Both the position numbers and the translations under genes were made by a program. The notes beneath the pieces were generated by a model. It was not told where the DNA came from. It did no database searches and saw only the letters and a list, made by a program, of their open reading frames with translations. From the IMG/VR virus record IMGVR_UViG_3300024502_000010, positions 124,001-188,000 of that record: a stretch of 64,000 nt of DNA, one strand, 5' to 3'. Below, piece by piece: positions 43 to 10,471 of the stretch. Numbering within the stretch: position 1 is the stretch's first letter; every line of letters begins with the position of its first letter.

Positions 43-753
43 TTATTCAATAGTGATGGAAGGTGCATCAACACACTCAGAACACCCTTCACGAGACCAA
101 CCAAGTGCTTCAGACACTGCAGGAAACTGGCAAGTAAAGATGCAACGAACAAGTTCTGCAATTTCCATGTGTTCCTTCTGTGTACCATGAGCAGAACGAA
201 GATCAATATAATGAATCCATGACCTTACAGAACCGGTCATATAGAGTCTTGTAGGCGTCGCTAAGGGCAGTACAAACCTTGCACACTCCTTTGCCACACC
301 CTTCTCTAAAAGGCGGTTATAAAGGCGTAGAGACTGCTCAAAATGAACGCGGATATCTTCTGTCAGTGTCAGTTTCAGATAGTCGGGAATATCATCAATA
401 GAGTTCTGACGGTTCTTTGTATCTTGGCGGCGCAGTTCAGGCAGAGGAATAGTGCTATTCAGAAGATTTGTATCAGCATATCGTTGCGAAAATTCTTGAT
501 ATGTAAATGAACGATGGCGAAGAATCTGAGCTGCTAGTCCACGAGTAGTATTGATTTCAACAGTCATTGAAGCTTGTTCAAAGATACTCCAGTGTTGATG
601 TTGGATGCAATACTTGAGAAGACCAGAAAACTTATCATTATCCTGATTAGCAGGATTACTTACCCGAGCACAATATGCCATATGCTTTTCTGCATCGGGA
701 GTAACACTAATGAGTTTTACTTCTGGTTTCATAAACTCAAAATCATCGTACAT
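43..753 (-). CDS. thyX: FAD-dependent thymidylate synthase ThyX
   Basis: ThyX signature RHRSFTYQEFSQRY, plus HWSIFE and EISARFVLP-like ECARFVLP; ATG at 753 or 732 is more likely than the track start at 795. Confidence 0.95.
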   Translation of the reverse strand: MYDDFEFMKPEVKLISVTPDAEKHMAYCARVSNPANQDNDKFSGLLKYCIQHQHWSIFEQASMTVEINTTRGLAAQILRHRSFTYQEFSQRYADTNLLNSTIPLPELRRQDTKNRQNSIDDIPDYLKLTLTEDIRVHFEQSLRLYNRLLEKGVAKECARFVLPLATPTRLYMTGSVRSWIHYIDLRSAHGTQKEHMEIAELVRCIFTCQFPAVSEALGWSREGCSECVDAPSITIE

Positions 754-3863: not shown

Positions 3864-4054
3864 CCACCAATGTGTTGGTCATTTACAATCACTTGAGGAA
3901 AGGTAGATCCCTCTCCGAATTCTGAATAAAATTCTTCTCTACTAAAATCACTATTCAATTTGTAGACTACATGTTGCAGTTGTGCCAACTCTAGCACCTG
4001 TTGAACTTTTGTGCAATATGGGCAACCATCTTTTGAATAAACTGTGAACTTCAT
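3818..4054 (-). CDS. nrdC: glutaredoxin
   Basis: CPYC active site, TFPQV and IGG motifs; start at MKFTVY. Confidence 0.92.
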   Translation of the reverse strand: MKFTVYSKDGCPYCTKVQQVLELAQLQHVVYKLNSDFSREEFYSEFGEGSTFPQVIVNDQHIGGCTDTVQYLKEQNLV

Positions 4055-4182
4055 TTTTTTCTGCAATTTTGTGGAATATTTATAGAAGATTTATTATAAG
4101 TCTTTACTGGTGGTCTGTAAAGTCCAGGCCATGTATCACGAATAATTTCTGCGAGTTTGTATGGTGTTGTAGAAGTTATCAT
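4051..4182 (-). CDS. 43-aa hypothetical peptide (MITSTTPYKLAEIIRDTWPGLYRPP...)
   Basis: ORF read by hand; ATGA overlaps at both ends. Confidence 0.55.
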   Translation of the reverse strand: MITSTTPYKLAEIIRDTWPGLYRPPVKTYNKSSINIPQNCRKK

Positions 4183-4253
4183 AAGTCCTGCATAACAGAT
4201 AATATAAACATTAGGATTCCAAAAAGTTGGAAGAGAACTAAGATGAGAAGCAT
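4179..4253 (-). CDS. 24-aa hydrophobic micropeptide (MLLILVLFQLFGILMFILSVMQDL)
   Basis: ORF read by hand; coupled to the next ORF. Confidence 0.4.
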   Translation of the reverse strand: MLLILVLFQLFGILMFILSVMQDL

Positions 4254-4807
4254 TTGAGGTTTTCTACTAGGAGTTCTAATTCTTGTAGGGATGCGTCCCA
4301 TTTTAGGGCATTCGCTCTTGAAGATATAACCCAAATATTATCGGGGGTATATCCTTTACCAGGAACCTTTTGATCTAAACTAGGATTTCTTGGATCTCTT
4401 TTATCATTAGTAGATACAAGAGGTATTCCAAGTAAAGGACAAGTTTCTGGAATAATAATATCATCTATAGTTATACTAAATGGAATACCCTTTCTTTTTG
4501 CCCTATGTTGAGCATTATGAAACATACTATATCTTCTATCGTCTTTTTTTAATTCACCTTCTGGTTTCTTTTTAGTTTTATTAAAAGCAATAGTAGTTTC
4601 TCTCCTAACACACCCACAACTAGTAGTTGAACCATTCATAAGACCATATCTCTCGCAAGTTTTTTCTCCACCACATTCACATTTACAAGTTGAATAAACT
4701 CTATTCTTCCCACTCTTAAAGACTACTTCTTCTTTCAGGACAGTAAGTTTTCCAAATTTTTTACCAATCAAAGCACCACAAGGTTTTGATTTATTATTTA
4801 AGGGCAT
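4238..4807 (-). CDS. free-standing HNH-family homing endonuclease
   Basis: N-terminal GKKFGKLTV...CKCECG...TTSCGC module; C-terminal CPLLG..SLDQKVP..GY...NIWVIS.RAN..K nuclease core. Confidence 0.8.
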   Translation of the reverse strand: MPLNNKSKPCGALIGKKFGKLTVLKEEVVFKSGKNRVYSTCKCECGGEKTCERYGLMNGSTTSCGCVRRETTIAFNKTKKKPEGELKKDDRRYSMFHNAQHRAKRKGIPFSITIDDIIIPETCPLLGIPLVSTNDKRDPRNPSLDQKVPGKGYTPDNIWVISSRANALKWDASLQELELLVENLKCFSS

Positions 4808-4900
4808 TATCCTAACTTTGAATATCTATTATTATTTATATTTTATCATACTTTGGGTCTTATGTAAATAAAAAAGACCCCAACAATGAGGTCTTTAAAA

Positions 4901-5962
4901 TCAAAGTGCGTTGCCCCGAGGCAAAACTTCCTCTGGAAAAACAAAATTTTCATGTGGTTGGTCTACGGGAGCCATCCAAGCACGAAGCCCTTCGTTAAGA
5001 AGTATATTCTTCGTGTAGAAAGTTTCGTATTCCGGATTGACGGCTGCTTCAATCTCCTGACTAACAAAGTCGTAAGCACGAAGATTGAGAGCAAGACCGA
5101 TAATCCCGATAGAAGATGTCCAGAGACCCATGACGGGAACAAAGAGCATAAAGAAATGTAACCAACGCTTGTTACTAAAAGCAATTCCAAAGATTTGCGA
5201 CCAGAAACGGTTAGCAGTAACCATTGAATAGGTTTCTTCCTCTTGTGTTGGTTCGAATGCCTTGAATGTATTTGCTTGATCACTATCTTCAAATAGTGTG
5301 TTTTCTACAGTTGCTCCGTGAATAGCACAGAGCAGTGCTCCACCCAGTATACCAGCAACACCCATCATATGAAATGGGTTAAGAGTCCAGTTGTGAAAAC
5401 CCTGAAGGAACAGAAGGAACCTGAAGATAGCAGCAACACCAAAGGAAGGTGCAAAGAACCAACTGGATTGACCCAGAGGGTACATCAGGAAGACGCTCAC
5501 AAACACTGCGATGGGACCAGAGAATGCAATTGCGTTGTAAGGACGGATGCCTACCAGTCGTGAGATCTCAAACTGGCGAAGCATAAATCCGATCAGACTA
5601 AAGGCCCCGTGGAGCGCCACAAAAGTCCATAGTCCCCCAAGTTGGAACCACCTGACGATATCCCCTTGAGCCTCAGGACCCCAGAGCAGAAGAAGAGAAT
5701 GACCCATAGAATCTGCTGGAGTACTAACTGCTGCAGTAAGAAAGTTTGCACCCTCAAGATAGGAACTCGCAAGCCCGTGAGTATACCAACTCGTGACGAA
5801 AGTTGTCCCAGTAATCCAACCACCAAGAGCAAGATAAGCAGTGGGAAAAAGAAGAAGTCCAGACCAGCCAACAAAAACGAAACGGTCTCTTTTAAGCCAG
5901 TCATCGAGTACATCAAACCATCCTCGTTGTTGAATAGGTTGTGAAAGTGTAGAAGAAGTCAT
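4901..5962 (-). CDS. psbD: photosystem II D2 protein
   Basis: Near-identical to D2 ([14 protein letters not shown]...[10 protein letters not shown]); no intron. Confidence 0.99.
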
Positions 5963-5983
5963 AACCTCCTTAGTTATTTCTCA

Positions 5984-6017
5984 TATTTATCTTAACATTC
6001 CTTAACAAAGTAGTCAA
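5984..6017 (-). promoter_or_regulatory. psbD promoter (sigma70 plus T4-late box) with 10-bp direct repeats
   Basis: TTGACT-N17-TAAGAT; TAAATA; CTTAACATTC/CTTAACAAAG repeat between -35 and -10. Confidence 0.55.
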
Positions 6018-6030
6018 TGAGTGTTTGTGC

Positions 6031-6153
6031 TTATCCCCAATACATCTGACCGAGAGTGAATAAGACAAATACAAGAACTGTAAATACCATCATACCTACA
6101 CCTGCCCAGATGATCCAGGGTTCCATAGGATGATGTTGATTATTATGAGACAT
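6031..6153 (-). CDS. 40-aa single-pass membrane peptide (MSHNNQHHPMEPWIIWAGVGMMVFTVLVFVLFTLGQMYWG)
   Basis: ORF read by hand; clean TM helix; directly upstream of the psbD promoter. Confidence 0.6.
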   Translation of the reverse strand: MSHNNQHHPMEPWIIWAGVGMMVFTVLVFVLFTLGQMYWG

Positions 6154-6179
6154 AAAAAAAGAGGGTTGTTACACCCTCT
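6154..6179 (-). terminator. Rho-independent terminator
   Basis: AGAGGGT-GTAACA-ACCCTCT followed by T7. Confidence 0.8.
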
Positions 6180-6201
6180 AATTATATCAGTTATTCAGTT
6201 G

Positions 6202-6246
6202 TTATCAACCAATTGAAGGTGCAGTGAGAGCAACAGGAGTTGCTTC
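6202..6246 (-). pseudogene. psbA: orphan 3' end of a second psbA allele
   Basis: GAA GCA ACT CCT GTT GCT CTC ACT GCA CCT TCA ATT GGT TGA TAA = [13 protein letters not shown], matching the D1 C-terminus. Confidence 0.85.
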
Positions 6247-6276
6247 AGAAAACTGAGGATAGGTTTTTATTATTAC

Positions 6277-6304
6277 TTGACTTTTTGATAATTTATGATA
6301 TAGT
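6277..6304 (+). promoter_or_regulatory. sigma70 promoter with extended -10
   Basis: TTGACT-N16-(TGa)TATAGT. Confidence 0.6.
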
Positions 6305-6346
6305 TTCTTAGTGGAAACACACATCACACACATTAGGAGAATATCT

Positions 6347-6550
6347 ATGACACCTTATGAACTTCGATTTGAAATCTTTAAGCAAGCATATAATATGCTT
6401 AATGACCAGTTTAGCATGGAATATGATACTGCTGTTCGTTGGAATGAAGATGAGAACAAAAAAGTAGCAATGGATTATCCAGAGTTTCCAACACTTAATC
6501 AAGTTCTAGAACAAGCAGAAATCATTAATGATTTTGTAAGTTCCAAATAA
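6347..6550 (+). CDS. 67-aa hypothetical protein (MTPYELRFEIFKQAY...)
   Basis: Own promoter, SD AGGAGA and a downstream terminator. Confidence 0.8.
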   Translation: MTPYELRFEIFKQAYNMLNDQFSMEYDTAVRWNEDENKKVAMDYPEFPTLNQVLEQAEIINDFVSSK

Positions 6551-6554
6551 AGTT

Positions 6555-6582
6555 AAAGGAGGGTTTTATCCCTCCTTTTTTA
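6555..6582. terminator. bidirectional terminator
   Basis: AAAGGAGGG-TTTTAT-CCCTCCTTT followed by a T-run, between convergent genes. Confidence 0.8.
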
Positions 6583-7317
6583 TTATCTTTTGTTTCTATT
6601 ATAAGTTGCTCTTACAGCATCAAAAGATACTCTATCCTTTTCCTTTTCATCATCGGGAAGATTTGAATATGATGTATTAGCAAGTTTTGCTCTTCTTTGT
6701 TTCTTTTCTGGTGTTTGGTCTGTACTTGTTTTAGCAGTTCTTGCCCAACCCTGATGAACTGCATCAGCACCTGCTTCTCTTGAAGTTCCACTACCACTTC
6801 TTTCACCTCTTCTAATAGCACGAAGGGCAGCGGCAGCAGATGAACGATTTGCTGCTCTACCGAAAGAACGCTTATCACCAGATGCTCTACCATATCCATA
6901 TCTTTTATCTAATGCAGCATCAGATGCTTTCTCATAAGGACTATCCTCTCTTTCTATAATATTGTCTCTCCACTCTTCACTCATATTCACCATAATTGCT
7001 TCTGCTGCTTGTTGAGTATCAGCATATCCTTCATCAAGTAAGTGTGAAAGAATTAGATCGTAAACATCTACTTCTTCTTTTGCTAAATCAGAATCGACAC
7101 GAACATTTGAACCTGTTCTTACATTTCTTCTTGCTGCTGCCTGATGAGCGCGGCGTCTTGCCATCCAAGCACCACTTATACCACCACTATCTACATCTTG
7201 TGCATCTCTCTTTCTTAACATTCCTTTGACTTTTCTATCAGAGATTTCATCCAGTTGCTGATTTTCAACAACTTCCATATATGCTTCTTGAAGATTGCGA
7301 AGTTCTTGTGCGTCCAT
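6583..7317 (-). CDS. late modular hypothetical protein (cyanophage LLDEGYA-module family)
   Basis: Late box CTAAATA upstream; module YDLILSHLLDEGYADTQQAAEAIMVNMSEEWR shared with the 63027 ORF. Confidence 0.8.
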   Translation of the reverse strand: MDAQELRNLQEAYMEVVENQQLDEISDRKVKGMLRKRDAQDVDSGGISGAWMARRRAHQAAARRNVRTGSNVRVDSDLAKEEVDVYDLILSHLLDEGYADTQQAAEAIMVNMSEEWRDNIIEREDSPYEKASDAALDKRYGYGRASGDKRSFGRAANRSSAAAALRAIRRGERSGSGTSREAGADAVHQGWARTAKTSTDQTPEKKQRRAKLANTSYSNLPDDEKEKDRVSFDAVRATYNRNKR

Positions 7318-7332
7318 TTTTATGAATACTTT

Positions 7333-7695
7333 TTAGTTATTTAGGTATTCTATCATCTTTTGAAGAGTGCTGATGTTGTCTCCTACAAGACCTAATGCAG
7401 TGTTGCAGTTGTTACAGAGAACACCACGAACCTTATTTGTAGAGTGGCAGTGGTCTATACACTTCTTGGTTAGTTCCACATCACATATTTGGCAGTTCTC
7501 ATTCTTCATTAGGTCATTATATTGGTCTTCTGTAAGTTTAAATCTGCGTCTAGCATATTCGTGAGTCTTATAATATTGCCTACGAACTTCCCGTTCACAA
7601 TCCTTACACTTTGATTGAACCCCAGAAGGTCTACTACTTCTTTTAGAGAAACTATCAAGTTCTTTTGTTTCTCCACATCTACTACAAGTTTTCAT
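7333..7695 (-). CDS. endonuclease VII-family homing endonuclease (F-CphI-like)
   Basis: CQIC...IDHCH..NKVRGVLCNNCNTALG Endo VII motif; N-terminal CxxC/CxxC; position downstream of psbA; start ATG at 7695. Confidence 0.88.
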   Translation of the reverse strand: MKTCSRCGETKELDSFSKRSSRPSGVQSKCKDCEREVRRQYYKTHEYARRRFKLTEDQYNDLMKNENCQICDVELTKKCIDHCHSTNKVRGVLCNNCNTALGLVGDNISTLQKMIEYLNN

Positions 7696-7740
7696 TATGG
7701 TATGGAAGTTTGGTATGGAACTATTTATGAATAATACCAT

Positions 7741-7768
7741 AAAAAAAGAGACCTGTAAAGGTCTCTTC
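7741..7768 (-). terminator. psbA terminator
   Basis: AAGAGACC-TTTACA-GGTCTCTT followed by a T-run. Confidence 0.8.
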
Positions 7769-7792
7769 ATTCTTATTCAGTTTTTATAAAAC

Positions 7793-8872
7793 TCAACCGA
7801 TTGCGGGTGCAGTAAGGGCAACAGGAGTGTTGCTAGCAGCAGCAAGATCCAGAGGGAAATTGTGTGCATTCCTTTCGTGCATCACCTCGAGCCCGAGTCC
7901 AGCACGGTTCAGAACATCTGCCCAAGTGTTGAGGACACGACCCTGTGAATCAATGATGGACTGGTTAAAGTTGAAACCGTTGAGGTTGAATGCCATGGTG
8001 CTAACACCAAGAGCAGTGAACCAGATACCAACTACAGGCCATGCAGCAAGGAAGAAGTGCAGCGAACGTGAGTTATTAAAGGAAGCATATTGGAAAATAA
8101 GGCGTCCGAAATAACCGTGAGCAGCAACGATGTTATAGGTCTCTTCTTCTTGACCAAACTTGTAACCATAGTTCTGTGACTCGTTCTCAGTGGTTTCACG
8201 AACCAGTGAGGAAGTAACCAGAGAACCGTGCATAGCACTGAACAGAGAACCTCCAAAGACACCAGCCACACCAAGCATGTGGAAGGGGTGCATCAGGATG
8301 TTGTGCTCTGCCTGGAACACAAGCATATAGTTGAACGTACCAGAGATACCCAGAGGCATCGCATCAGAGAAAGAACCTTGACCGAAAGGATACACCAGGA
8401 ACACAGCAGAAGCAGCAGCCACAGGTGCAGAGTAAGCAACACAGATCCAAGGACGCATACCAAGACGGTATGAAAGTTCCCATTCACGACCCATGTAAGC
8501 GTAGATACCGATAAGGAAGTGGAACACTACAAGTTGGAAAGGACCACCGTTGTAAAGCCACTCATCAAGCGAAGCAGCTTCCCAGATGGGATAAAAGTGC
8601 AGTCCAATCGCGTTGGACGAAGGAATAACAGCACCAGAGATGATGTTGTTTCCGTACATGAGTGAACCAGCAACGGGTTCACGGATACCATCAATGTCCA
8701 CTGGGGGAGCACCGATGAATGCGATGATGAAACAAGTCGTAGCAGCAAGCAGGCAAGGAATCATGAGGACTCCGAACCAACCGACATAAAGACGATTATC
8801 GGTTGATGTGACCCAGTTGCAGAATTGTTCCCAAGTATTCGATTGTCGTTGACGTGAAATTGTAGCAGTCAT
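7793..8872 (-). CDS. psbA: photosystem II D1 protein
   Basis: Full D1 sequence; E130; H332/E333 retained; no intron. Confidence 0.99.
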
Positions 8873-8886
8873 TGTTTTAAGCAGTT

Positions 8887-8992
8887 AGTAAGACCATCAG
8901 GGAAATGGTGGAGATACTATGCTCCCCGCACCCTTAGCGGGGATATGAGAGACGTAATTTATACACCCATAGGTCTCGGTTATCGGGTGTCT
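8887..8992 (-). ncRNA. PhotoRC-II-like structured psbA leader
   Basis: GAGAC...GUCUC, CACCC...GGGUG, CCCCGC...GCGGGG and ACCAU...AUGGU pairings in the psbA 5' UTR; family name from recollection, not a search. Confidence 0.6.
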
Positions 8993-9040
8993 AACAATGT
9001 TAAGGGAACGTTGCGTTCCGTAACATTTGTTTACCTATTT

Positions 9041-9069
9041 ATCATACTACGGTTTGCCGCCTGTGTCAA
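9041..9069 (-). promoter_or_regulatory. psbA sigma70 promoter (plus adjacent late TAAATA)
   Basis: TTGACA-N17-TATGAT. Confidence 0.75.
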
Positions 9070-9132
9070 CCCCCCTCCCCAAATGGGGACACTCTCCTAA
9101 ATACTCATAGTGTTTATCACAACAATAAGAAA

Positions 9133-9594
9133 ATGAAAAGACTTCTATTAGCCTTTTCGTTATTCTTCGCAATCCCAGTTAATGCTGCTGAAATTACATC
9201 AAAAATCACTGATTCCGTTCAATTGAAAGTTGATGGTGCCGCAGTTCAATCAACTCGAATTGGTGCTTCCTATTCGGCGTCAGGAACCAATATCCAAGCA
9301 ACATCCTTTGGAGGTGTTGGTGGTGCTGGAACCTATGACATTAATACTCCAGGTCAAGCATTTACTTTCTCTGAAAGTTTCAATGCTGCTGATACTCCAG
9401 TTAATACTCAAACAGTTACTAACGGTGTTATTGGAACACCAAATCTCTACGGAGATAGTGTAACTCAAGTTGGTGGTGAGAAAGGAACTCTTGCAGGTAC
9501 TCTTTCACCAACTGGTGTTCCTACTGTTACTGCTGGTGGTGCTGGAACAAGTGCTACTGCTCAAAGGTCCATTGAACTGAGTGTATTCAAATGA
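9133..9594 (+). CDS. secreted Gly/Thr-rich hypothetical protein
   Basis: Signal peptide ending VNA; late box CTAAATA at 9097-9103. Confidence 0.85.
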   Translation: MKRLLLAFSLFFAIPVNAAEITSKITDSVQLKVDGAAVQSTRIGASYSASGTNIQATSFGGVGGAGTYDINTPGQAFTFSESFNAADTPVNTQTVTNGVIGTPNLYGDSVTQVGGEKGTLAGTLSPTGVPTVTAGGAGTSATAQRSIELSVFK

Positions 9595-9956
9595 GACATT
9601 TAACTCCCGTTTTGCTTTTAGCAACGGGAGTCATTTGTACTCCCGTTTATGCTGAGAGCGTTGTGCCTAATTTTACTAGAGGCACAATCAATGCAACAAC
9701 AGAATCTACAACAAGAATTGTAGAAGCAATCCGCCAAGTTGAATATACAACTGGTGAATCTTATACTGTAACTGGTACGAACATCAACATTCCTGGAAAT
9801 CCTACTAAGGATACAAATTATAGTATTACAACTCCTGGTGCTCCATTCCAGTTCAGTGAAACCTATCTCGGACCTGGAGTGGCAAAAGAAACATGGATAG
9901 ATCGCACCACAGAAACTCAATCAACTACTACATCAATCTCTGTCTTTACGCAATAA
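9591..9956 (+). CDS. secreted Thr-rich hypothetical protein, paralogue of the 9133 ORF
   Basis: Signal peptide; shared TPG..F.FSE and C-terminal SVF motifs. Confidence 0.85.
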   Translation: MRHLTPVLLLATGVICTPVYAESVVPNFTRGTINATTESTTRIVEAIRQVEYTTGESYTVTGTNINIPGNPTKDTNYSITTPGAPFQFSETYLGPGVAKETWIDRTTETQSTTTSISVFTQ

Positions 9957-10471
9957 TTTCAACAGGGACTGCATTTGCTCAGCAAGCTCCATCAAATACA
10001 AACATCGCAGGACCTTCAGCATCTGCTACTGGTAATGTAACAAACCAGGCAGTTCAAGTGCTTCAGGGCCCTTATGCTATGAATACATTTGGTGCTGGTG
10101 TTTCTTGTCAAGGACCAACATTTTCCCTGGCACCATTTATTATTGGTAATGGTAATGCTAGTCAAGATCCAGAACAGTTTTCATCTTATTCTGGAAATGC
10201 TGGATTATCTATGGGATTTAATATTCCCTTAGATGGTTCTTTACAAGAACTCTGCAAATCAAGAGCAAGAGTTGAAATCTCAAGACAACAAGCCGAAGCT
10301 GATAAAGCAAGATTAGATTTTGAACTTGTAAGATTATTAAAATGTGGTGAAGCATACAAAGCAGGAATTATGTTCCATCCTGATAGTCCTTACTACAAAG
10401 TTTGTGAAGATATTGTTGTGAAGTACCCAAGAGTTGAGGATGTGGTCAATGGAACCAATACAACCTATTGA
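9893..10471 (+). CDS. secreted hypothetical protein with beta-rich N-half and Cys-containing helical C-half
   Basis: ORF track; AFA signal-cleavage-like site. Confidence 0.8.
   Translation: MDRSHHRNSINYYINLCLYAIISTGTAFAQQAPSNTNIAGPSASATGNVTNQAVQVLQGPYAMNTFGAGVSCQGPTFSLAPFIIGNGNASQDPEQFSSYSGNAGLSMGFNIPLDGSLQELCKSRARVEISRQQAEADKARLDFELVRLLKCGEAYKAGIMFHPDSPYYKVCEDIVVKYPRVEDVVNGTNTTY

Follow-up and report, generated by a model that had tools for sequence, protein, structure and literature searches.

The window analysed here is a 64,000-nt stretch covering positions 124001-188000 of the IMG/VR virus record IMGVR_UViG_3300024502_000010 (204,829 bp; completeness estimate 78%). On its minus strand, a PhotoRC-II RNA motif, psbA, a hairpin, a nuclease ORF, a 244-codon ORF with several small ORFs, and psbD follow one another in this order (Table 1). 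The psbA product matched Pfam Photo_RC (E 2e-89), and the gene shares 82-88% nucleotide identity with cyanophage psbA genes. The sequence-only reading of this DNA had described psbA as intronless. Indeed, its 359 codons run uninterrupted, and no match to the group I intron family RF00028 was found within 4000-10000 of the window. Over psbA and the adjoining nuclease gene, the nearest cultured relative is Synechococcus phage S-SKS1 (82.7% nucleotide identity). The PhotoRC-II motif was likewise found upstream of psbA at five related loci (L010, L012, L031, L039 and L159).

Table 1. Features of the psbA-psbD region, in window coordinates
Feature	Position	Strand	Remarks
psbD	4901-5962	minus	ORF; far edge of the variable psbA-psbD interval that houses the nuclease gene
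244-codon ORF	6583-7317	minus	between nuclease gene and psbD; small ORFs also in this interval
Free-standing Endo VII-motif (DHHRN, F-CphI-type) nuclease, 120 aa	7333-7695	minus	N-terminal CxxC...CxxC; C-terminal D81, H82, H84, R90, N98
Promoter-like site (TTTACA, 17 nt, TATTAT, with TG)	7731-7759	minus	5' of nuclease start; consensus match only
Terminator-like hairpin and T run	7745-7768	minus	intergenic, psbA/nuclease gene
psbA (photosystem II D1)	7793-8872	minus	359 codons, one open frame, without intron
Stretch matching the 60-bp S-BM4 duplex (F-CphI substrate)	7842-7901	minus	14 of 60 positions differ; oligonucleotide SBM4-60Top, PMC6083498 supplement
Recoded island, codons 325-342	7847-7900	minus	GGG327, CTC328 (M328L), GAG329, GAA333, AGG334, GCA336, AAT338, GAT342
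PhotoRC-II RNA motif (RF01717)	8909-9002	minus	psbA leader; 84 bits, E 3e-14

The phage was detected in at least 18 riverine metagenomes and 6 metatranscriptomes. Contigs from public runs (contigs only) contained no variant letters across 6000-9200. Over 7272-8302, which takes in the nuclease gene and the psbA 3' end, RNA-library contigs showed no differences; they agree with transcription of the nuclease gene but are no proof of it. The psbA terminator hairpin and the promoter-like site overlap just 5' of the nuclease start (7731-7768, minus strand). A Shine-Dalgarno-like reading of GAAAGGAATG was dropped, because an ATG follows it directly with no spacer, and this ATG is out of frame and heads no ORF. 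The ORF at 6583-7317 had no Pfam family and only weak PHROG matches, to groups with no assigned function; it also showed no real similarity to the S-PM2 gene at the same position.

The nuclease gene next to psbA

The start of the nuclease ORF was set at 7695 because its homologues begin with MKTCSRCG. The product matched Pfam Endonuclease_7 (PF02945) with 65 bits (E 5.7e-18, cut-off 23.6) and PHROG 2633, endonuclease VII, with an E value of 7e-37. Aligned with F-CphI, it has 36% identity throughout its length (E 1e-22), with residues 2-118 opposite F-CphI 10-138, and in this pairwise alignment D81, H82, H84, R90 and N98 correspond to F-CphI D101, H102, H104, R110 and N118. F-CphI belongs to the DHHRN or Endo VII-motif nucleases, and mutagenesis showed that its D101, H102, R110 and N118 matter (PMC6083498). 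The catalytic D-H-H-R-N motif was invariant across 16 relatives of the window's nuclease. Among these, dN/dS was 0.084 at a dS of 0.5-1.9, indicating a gene that is maintained under purifying selection and is functional rather than decaying.

The best relative of solved structure over the whole length was Hpy99I (E 4e-6), whereas only residues 55-104 of the nuclease (50 residues, E 0.004) aligned with T4 Endo VII (1E7D). The C-terminal motif and the whole-length F-CphI alignment are those of the endonuclease clade; the S-SKS1 orthologue (gp28) is listed with a C-terminal motif in PMC6083498, where it appears solely in the homologue table. The catalytic beta-beta-alpha-metal motif (PF02945) is shared with T4 endonuclease VII (gp49), but in gp49, of about 157 aa, it is N-terminal and followed by a dimerisation domain, whereas in the window it is C-terminal after a zinc-finger-like domain. 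A gp49-type Holliday junction resolvase was rejected as an assignment, given 120 aa, the C-terminal motif and 50 aligned residues. No second Endo VII-family gene turned up in the 205-kb record, whose completeness is estimated at 78%.

The closest known system is the F-CphI/psbA intron pair of phage S-PM2, which spreads by collaborative homing (Zeng, Bonocora and Shub 2009; PMC6083498). There, the CGT of codon 334 and the AAT of codon 335 flank the psbA intron, and the F-CphI gene follows psbA. A 60-bp S-BM4 duplex that serves as F-CphI substrate spans codons 324-344, with codon 334 at its centre (PMC6083498), and the S-PM2 intron interrupts the F-CphI recognition sequence and so provides self-immunity (PMC5931967). 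The sequence-only reading had started from this background, which agrees with the published record. Throughout this work, the F-CphI site means this 60-bp substrate rather than mapped cut positions. The two systems share the enzyme family and its architecture (N-terminal Cys pairs, C-terminal D-H-H-R-N), the nuclease gene just downstream of psbA with psbD beyond, and the involvement of the codon 334 region. Unlike S-PM2, the window has no intron, and its site is altered by synonymous changes and M328L; moreover, its enzyme, whose activity is a prediction, belongs to a distinct S-SKS1-type clade and has 120 aa compared with 142 aa. Collaborative homing was rejected for the window because the defining group I intron is absent from its psbA.

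A nuclease protein scan of viral contigs yielded about 40 loci with homologues of 52-100% identity. In nearly all scanned loci reaching far enough upstream, the nuclease gene lies just 3' of psbA, and the psbA-nuclease-...-psbD layout is common to the window and S-PM2. In four loci without the nuclease (L086, L088, L095 and L099), psbD begins 63-248 nt after psbA. At least 19 changes of nuclease state were counted on the psbA tree; the gene is optional among relatives and lies between conserved genes.

The recoded segment of psbA and its link to the nuclease

The run of codons that had attracted attention, GGA CTC GGG CTC GAG GTG ATG CAC GAA AGG AAT GCA CAC AAT, is the reverse complement of 7859-7900 and corresponds exactly to psbA codons 325-338; the sequence-only reading had placed its end at 7855, 4 nt too generously. 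Its description of this patch as dense in unusual synonymous codons, with M328L and with H332, E333 and H337 retained, was accurate. AGG occurs once among the 13 Arg codons of the gene, at 334, and GGG once among the 33 Gly codons, at 327, while AAT accounts for 5 of the 23 Asn codons, two of these five being at 335 and 338. Met331 is kept, and N325G, also present in the window, is common in cyanophage D1. Scored by the gene's own codon usage, codons 325-338 had the lowest codon preference among 346 14-codon windows. Shuffling of synonymous codons gave P<1/5000 for the fixed window 325-338 and 0.038 for any window. AAT335 alone is non-discriminating, being the most frequent codon at 335 among nuclease-free alleles. 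Additionally, the raw number of mismatches to the F-CphI substrate (14 of 60 nt, nuclease-free median 12) is not unusual; the oddity of the patch lies in the type and location of the changes, not in their number.

We compared 164 distinct intronless cyanophage psbA alleles, of which 33 were nuclease-linked and 131 nuclease-free; a first comparison set held 30 and 54 distinct alleles, respectively. An unbiased sample came from two pattern scans of intronless alleles, AGR334 and CGN334, with 120 loci each. The sequence-only reading had proposed a codon-level scan along psbA, and it came out positive: in the first set, the four codons of the whole gene most strongly associated with the nuclease were 339, 337, 336 and 327, and 8 of the top 17 codons fell within 327-341. 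Divergence from the nuclease-free consensus in codons 327-341 reached 23.5% in nuclease-linked alleles, compared with 13.2% in nuclease-free ones (P 4e-8), whereas no excess was found in codons 1-320 (P 0.99) or 343-359 (P 0.31).

The local drop in codon preference, measured against the usage of each gene, was -0.50 in the 33 nuclease-linked alleles and -0.04 in the 131 nuclease-free ones (P 1e-14). It was confined to codons 325-342 (P 1e-14), extending past codon 338, the last of the codons quoted earlier, and was absent in the flanks (310-324, P 0.50; 343-357, P 0.59). A drop below -0.5 was seen in 17/33 nuclease-linked alleles and 2/131 nuclease-free ones. In sliding windows, a single peak appeared at starts of codons 325-327, where -log10 P reached 13; all other windows stayed at or below 3.5. 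The drop was found both in the window-type clade (n=15, P 1e-9) and in clades whose nucleases are 31-61% identical to the window's (n=18, P 2e-8). Many nuclease-linked alleles are related, and kinship is allowed for only in the paired test, which is of modest power: of 11 independent pairs on a tree of codons 1-320, 6.6 went the same way and 0.1 the opposite way (median p 0.03). On this evidence, codons 325-342 are a candidate nuclease recognition region in putatively resistant form.

An association of Leu328 and AGG334 with the nuclease had likewise been proposed, and it was borne out for Leu328 and for AGR334. Leu328 was present in 13/30 nuclease-linked alleles and in 3/54 nuclease-free ones. 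Anomalous AGR334, that is, AGR in a gene that otherwise uses CGN, was found in 23/33 and 16/131 alleles, respectively (P 2e-10), and in 7/8 and 11/88 when only the pattern-scan loci, drawn regardless of nuclease, were counted (P 2e-5). On its own, AGR334 is a weak marker, as lineages of AT-rich phages have AGR all along psbA: in the unbiased sample, the nuclease accompanied 14/102 AGR and 6/100 CGN alleles (P 0.10). Normalising to each gene's own codon usage removed this problem. Some nuclease-linked alleles of other clades keep CGN334.

In the window-type clade, first codon positions are among those with the strongest shifts. The first-position C was kept at codon 334 in 7% of nuclease-linked and 57% of nuclease-free alleles and at codon 341 in 27% and 87%, while the first-position A at codon 328 was kept in 27% and 73%. 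First-position shifts are protein-neutral only via six-fold degenerate codons, and the pattern fits an enzyme that reads conserved, non-wobble positions. Moreover, Met331, which adjoins the Mn-cluster ligands H332 and E333 of D1, was replaced in 6/30 nuclease-linked and 2/54 nuclease-free alleles. The replacements seen were Ser in L009, L028, L029, L050 and L051, Ile in L001 (S-SKS1) and L099, Val in L035 and L114, and Leu in L138. The isolate RB11-B, whose nuclease is only 40% identical, carries nearly the same recoded core, and the core of S-SKS1 is similar.

Introns, remnants and methylases at related loci

Group I introns are present in many psbA genes of the nuclease-scan loci, and all of them matched RF00028 above the gathering score. 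Three insertion points are used, which together span no more than 17 nt: codon 331 (AT^G) in L012 and L013; 334/335 in L031, L033, L034, L039, L040, L047, S-PM2 (L163) and S-SRM01 (L165); and 336/337 in L010, L011 and L159. S-CBWM1 (L164) adds a fourth point at or beside 337/338, so that the four lie within about 20 nt. The nucleases of L010-L013 and L031 are identical or about 93% identical to that of the window; L010 and L012, with introns at 336/337 and in codon 331, have an identical nuclease protein, and in the nuclease tree L031, with its intron at 334/335, and the intronless window allele share one tight clade. In the same clade, CGT or CGC is retained at codon 334 wherever the intron is at 334/335 or 336/337, and AGA or AGG stands there in 14 of 15 distinct intronless alleles. 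Since the alleles with an intron in codon 331 also have AGR334, AGR is not a strict alternative to an intron. The 336/337 intron of L159 is 73% identical to the codon-331 intron of L012, and that of L010 is about 65% identical to both 334/335 subfamilies; as introns at different points are related, they seem to have shifted their insertion point. Introns and recoding concentrate in codons 325-342, which form a nuclease-linked hot spot.

The patch is enriched in nuclease carriers and not exclusive to them: a similar one occurs in psbA of L086, L088, L095 and L099. The deepest dips among nuclease-free alleles were those of L099 and L125. In L125, a C-terminal nuclease remnant stands right after psbA, and the site is still recoded. 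The order at L125:3489-4800 is nuclease remnant, N6/N4 methylase-like ORF, 156-aa ORF, a duplicate of psbA codons 336-359, and psbD; the locus resembles a homing element in decay, with the target as the breakpoint of a rearrangement. Resistant alleles thus seem to persist after the nuclease is lost, in keeping with the life cycle expected of homing elements.

In L014 (positions 4012-4737), and likewise in L015 and L087, an N6/N4 DNA methylase gene (PF01555, E 3e-47) directly follows a nuclease 93% identical to the window's, and a 237-aa ORF of unknown family overlaps after the L014-type methylase.

Proposed homing with a recoded target, and the alternatives

From the family and position of the gene, its conservation under selection, the recoded island and the statistical link of this island to the nuclease, all obtained directly, we consider it likely that ORF 7333-7695 encodes a free-standing homing endonuclease that is self-immune through a recoded psbA site and spreads by intronless homing. 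Its target would be psbA around codons 327-341 in phages without the nuclease gene. This segment encodes invariant D1 residues beside the manganese-cluster ligands and so is conserved in every competitor. The phage's own psbA would escape cutting because the segment has been rewritten by several synonymous substitutions and the conservative M328L; among them, the first-position changes from CGN to AGG at 334 and from ATG to CTC at 328 alter positions that ordinary silent drift never touches. In a mixed infection, the enzyme would cut the sensitive psbA of a rival, and repair templated by the nuclease-carrying genome would transfer to it the resistant segment together with the nuclease gene and the 3' end of psbA. 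Cutting of the site by this enzyme, its block by recoding and the ensuing gene conversion are inferred. The earlier suggestion of immunity by recoding in an intronless-homing version of the S-PM2 system gains support from the comparative tests, in which recoding was linked to the nuclease in codons 325-342 only.

Such a system, with no intron, would work like intronless homing rather than collaborative homing. In the T-even phages, SegF at gene 56, SegG at gene 32 and MobE at nrdB (Belle 2002; Liu 2003; PMC2790892) are also optional nuclease genes between conserved genes. Their target lies in the neighbouring conserved gene of genomes without the nuclease, the carrier owes its protection to sequence differences at that site, and break repair with co-conversion spreads the gene; the same would hold for the window by analogy. 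The T-even enzymes are GIY-YIG or HNH nucleases, whereas the window phage has an Endo VII motif, another host system and a photosynthesis gene as the putative target, and marker exclusion is known for the T-even side only.

The patch might instead be a passenger that came along with the nuclease gene from a donor with other codon habits, either as a co-conversion tract or as what a lost intron left behind, with protection achieved otherwise or not needed. Homing by T4 SegF, SegG and I-TevI co-converts flanking markers, psbA is mosaic, with the frequent nuclease state changes noted above on its tree, and exon 2 of L013, which has its intron in codon 331, shares the GAA AGG AAT ... AAT codons with the window. 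However, a tract of this kind should start at the cut site and reach the nuclease gene by way of codons 343-359, yet these codons gave no signal (P 0.59 and 0.31), and the edges of the island are sharp on both sides. The island also recurs with nuclease clades 31-61% identical to that of the window, and by differing codon solutions at the same positions (AGA or AGG; CTC or TTA; M331 to S, I or V). Among psbA genes of other species, none exceeds 91.5% identity to that of the window, too distant for placing co-conversion breakpoints. We regard a passenger origin as unlikely. Chance clustering of rare codons is a far poorer candidate and extremely improbable: the any-window permutation of the single gene (P 0.038) leaves some room for it, but the window was pre-specified by the known F-CphI site, and the same island is found across 33 distinct nuclease-linked alleles.

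It is also improbable, somewhat more so than a passenger origin, that the enzyme is not aimed at psbA but is a junction resolvase or has another target, with the codons serving RNA or translation needs such as a CfrI-like antisense RNA, mRNA folding or pausing before the D1 C-terminus. The absence of a second Endo VII-family gene from what was recovered of the genome (78% by estimate) would suit a resolvase, and in S-PM2 an antisense RNA overlaps psbA at its 3' end as well as the beginning of F-CphI. This RNA, however, covers exon 2 and not codons 325-334. The C-terminal motif and the whole-length match to Hpy99I rather than T4 Endo VII point to the endonuclease type of PMC6083498. In addition, the gene is optional among relatives, the codon anomaly tracks nuclease presence rather than phage lineage, and four separate intron points crowd into the same 20 nt. 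It is very unlikely that DNA methylation provides the self-protection, in the manner of restriction-modification pairs like Hpy99I and its methylase (PDB 3FC3, 3GOX), and that recoding is secondary. Hpy99I is the nearest solved relative, some relatives' nucleases adjoin a DNA methylase gene (L014, L015 and L087, and L125 beside its remnant), and the window genome has an N6/N4 methylase gene of its own (G000:C1:54535-55284). That gene, however, lies about 76 kb from the nuclease gene, its product is only 38% identical to the L014 methylase, although of the same family, and psbA of L014 has a recoded island too. Methylation would also leave the bounded synonymous island unexplained, and with no adjacent methylase in the window, the context and optional distribution of the nuclease fit a homing element rather than a restriction-modification pair.

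Beyond the homing endonuclease proposed for the window, a broader reading is quite possible, although we put it at somewhat less than an even chance: codons 325-342 may be an arms-race hot spot, in which one long-lived F-CphI-type lineage has been tolerated through interchangeable solutions, either introns that hop among four points or recoding. Recoding would proceed by first-position changes, for which the six-fold degenerate codons of Arg and Leu give room, and would in some phages extend to replacement of Met331 by Ser, Ile or Val. If this is true, a selfish nuclease acts on the evolution of a photosynthesis gene found in abundance worldwide, at its silent sites and in its protein sequence alike, and resistant alleles outlive it, as L125 and L099 would illustrate. 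Among marine auxiliary metabolic genes, viral psbA ranks with the most abundant and best studied, and its variation is widely used to infer host range, recombination and selection; if the nuclease drives this bounded set of unpreferred codons, together with amino-acid changes near the water-splitting cluster in some phages, the region should be read as the trace of genetic conflict rather than as the outcome of adapted photosynthesis or of exchange with hosts. For studies of target sharing between nuclease and intron, the locus is a rare natural series: one nuclease is found with introns at three positions or with recoding, and S-PM2, the only experimentally studied case so far, showed one such state. 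We found no paper on recoded psbA targets beside F-CphI homologues; the enzyme family and intronless homing are already known.

Two further features of environmental cyanophage psbA genes were observed. In L096, L101, L114 and L042, an Endo VII-type gene lies convergently on the opposite strand right after the psbA stop, and psbA of these loci has Leu328 or Val331. Additional splits of psbA were found near codons 61, 108, 185, 216-231 and 298 (L031, L032, L038, L040, L042, L047 and L053), and some of these environmental genes have at least three interruptions.
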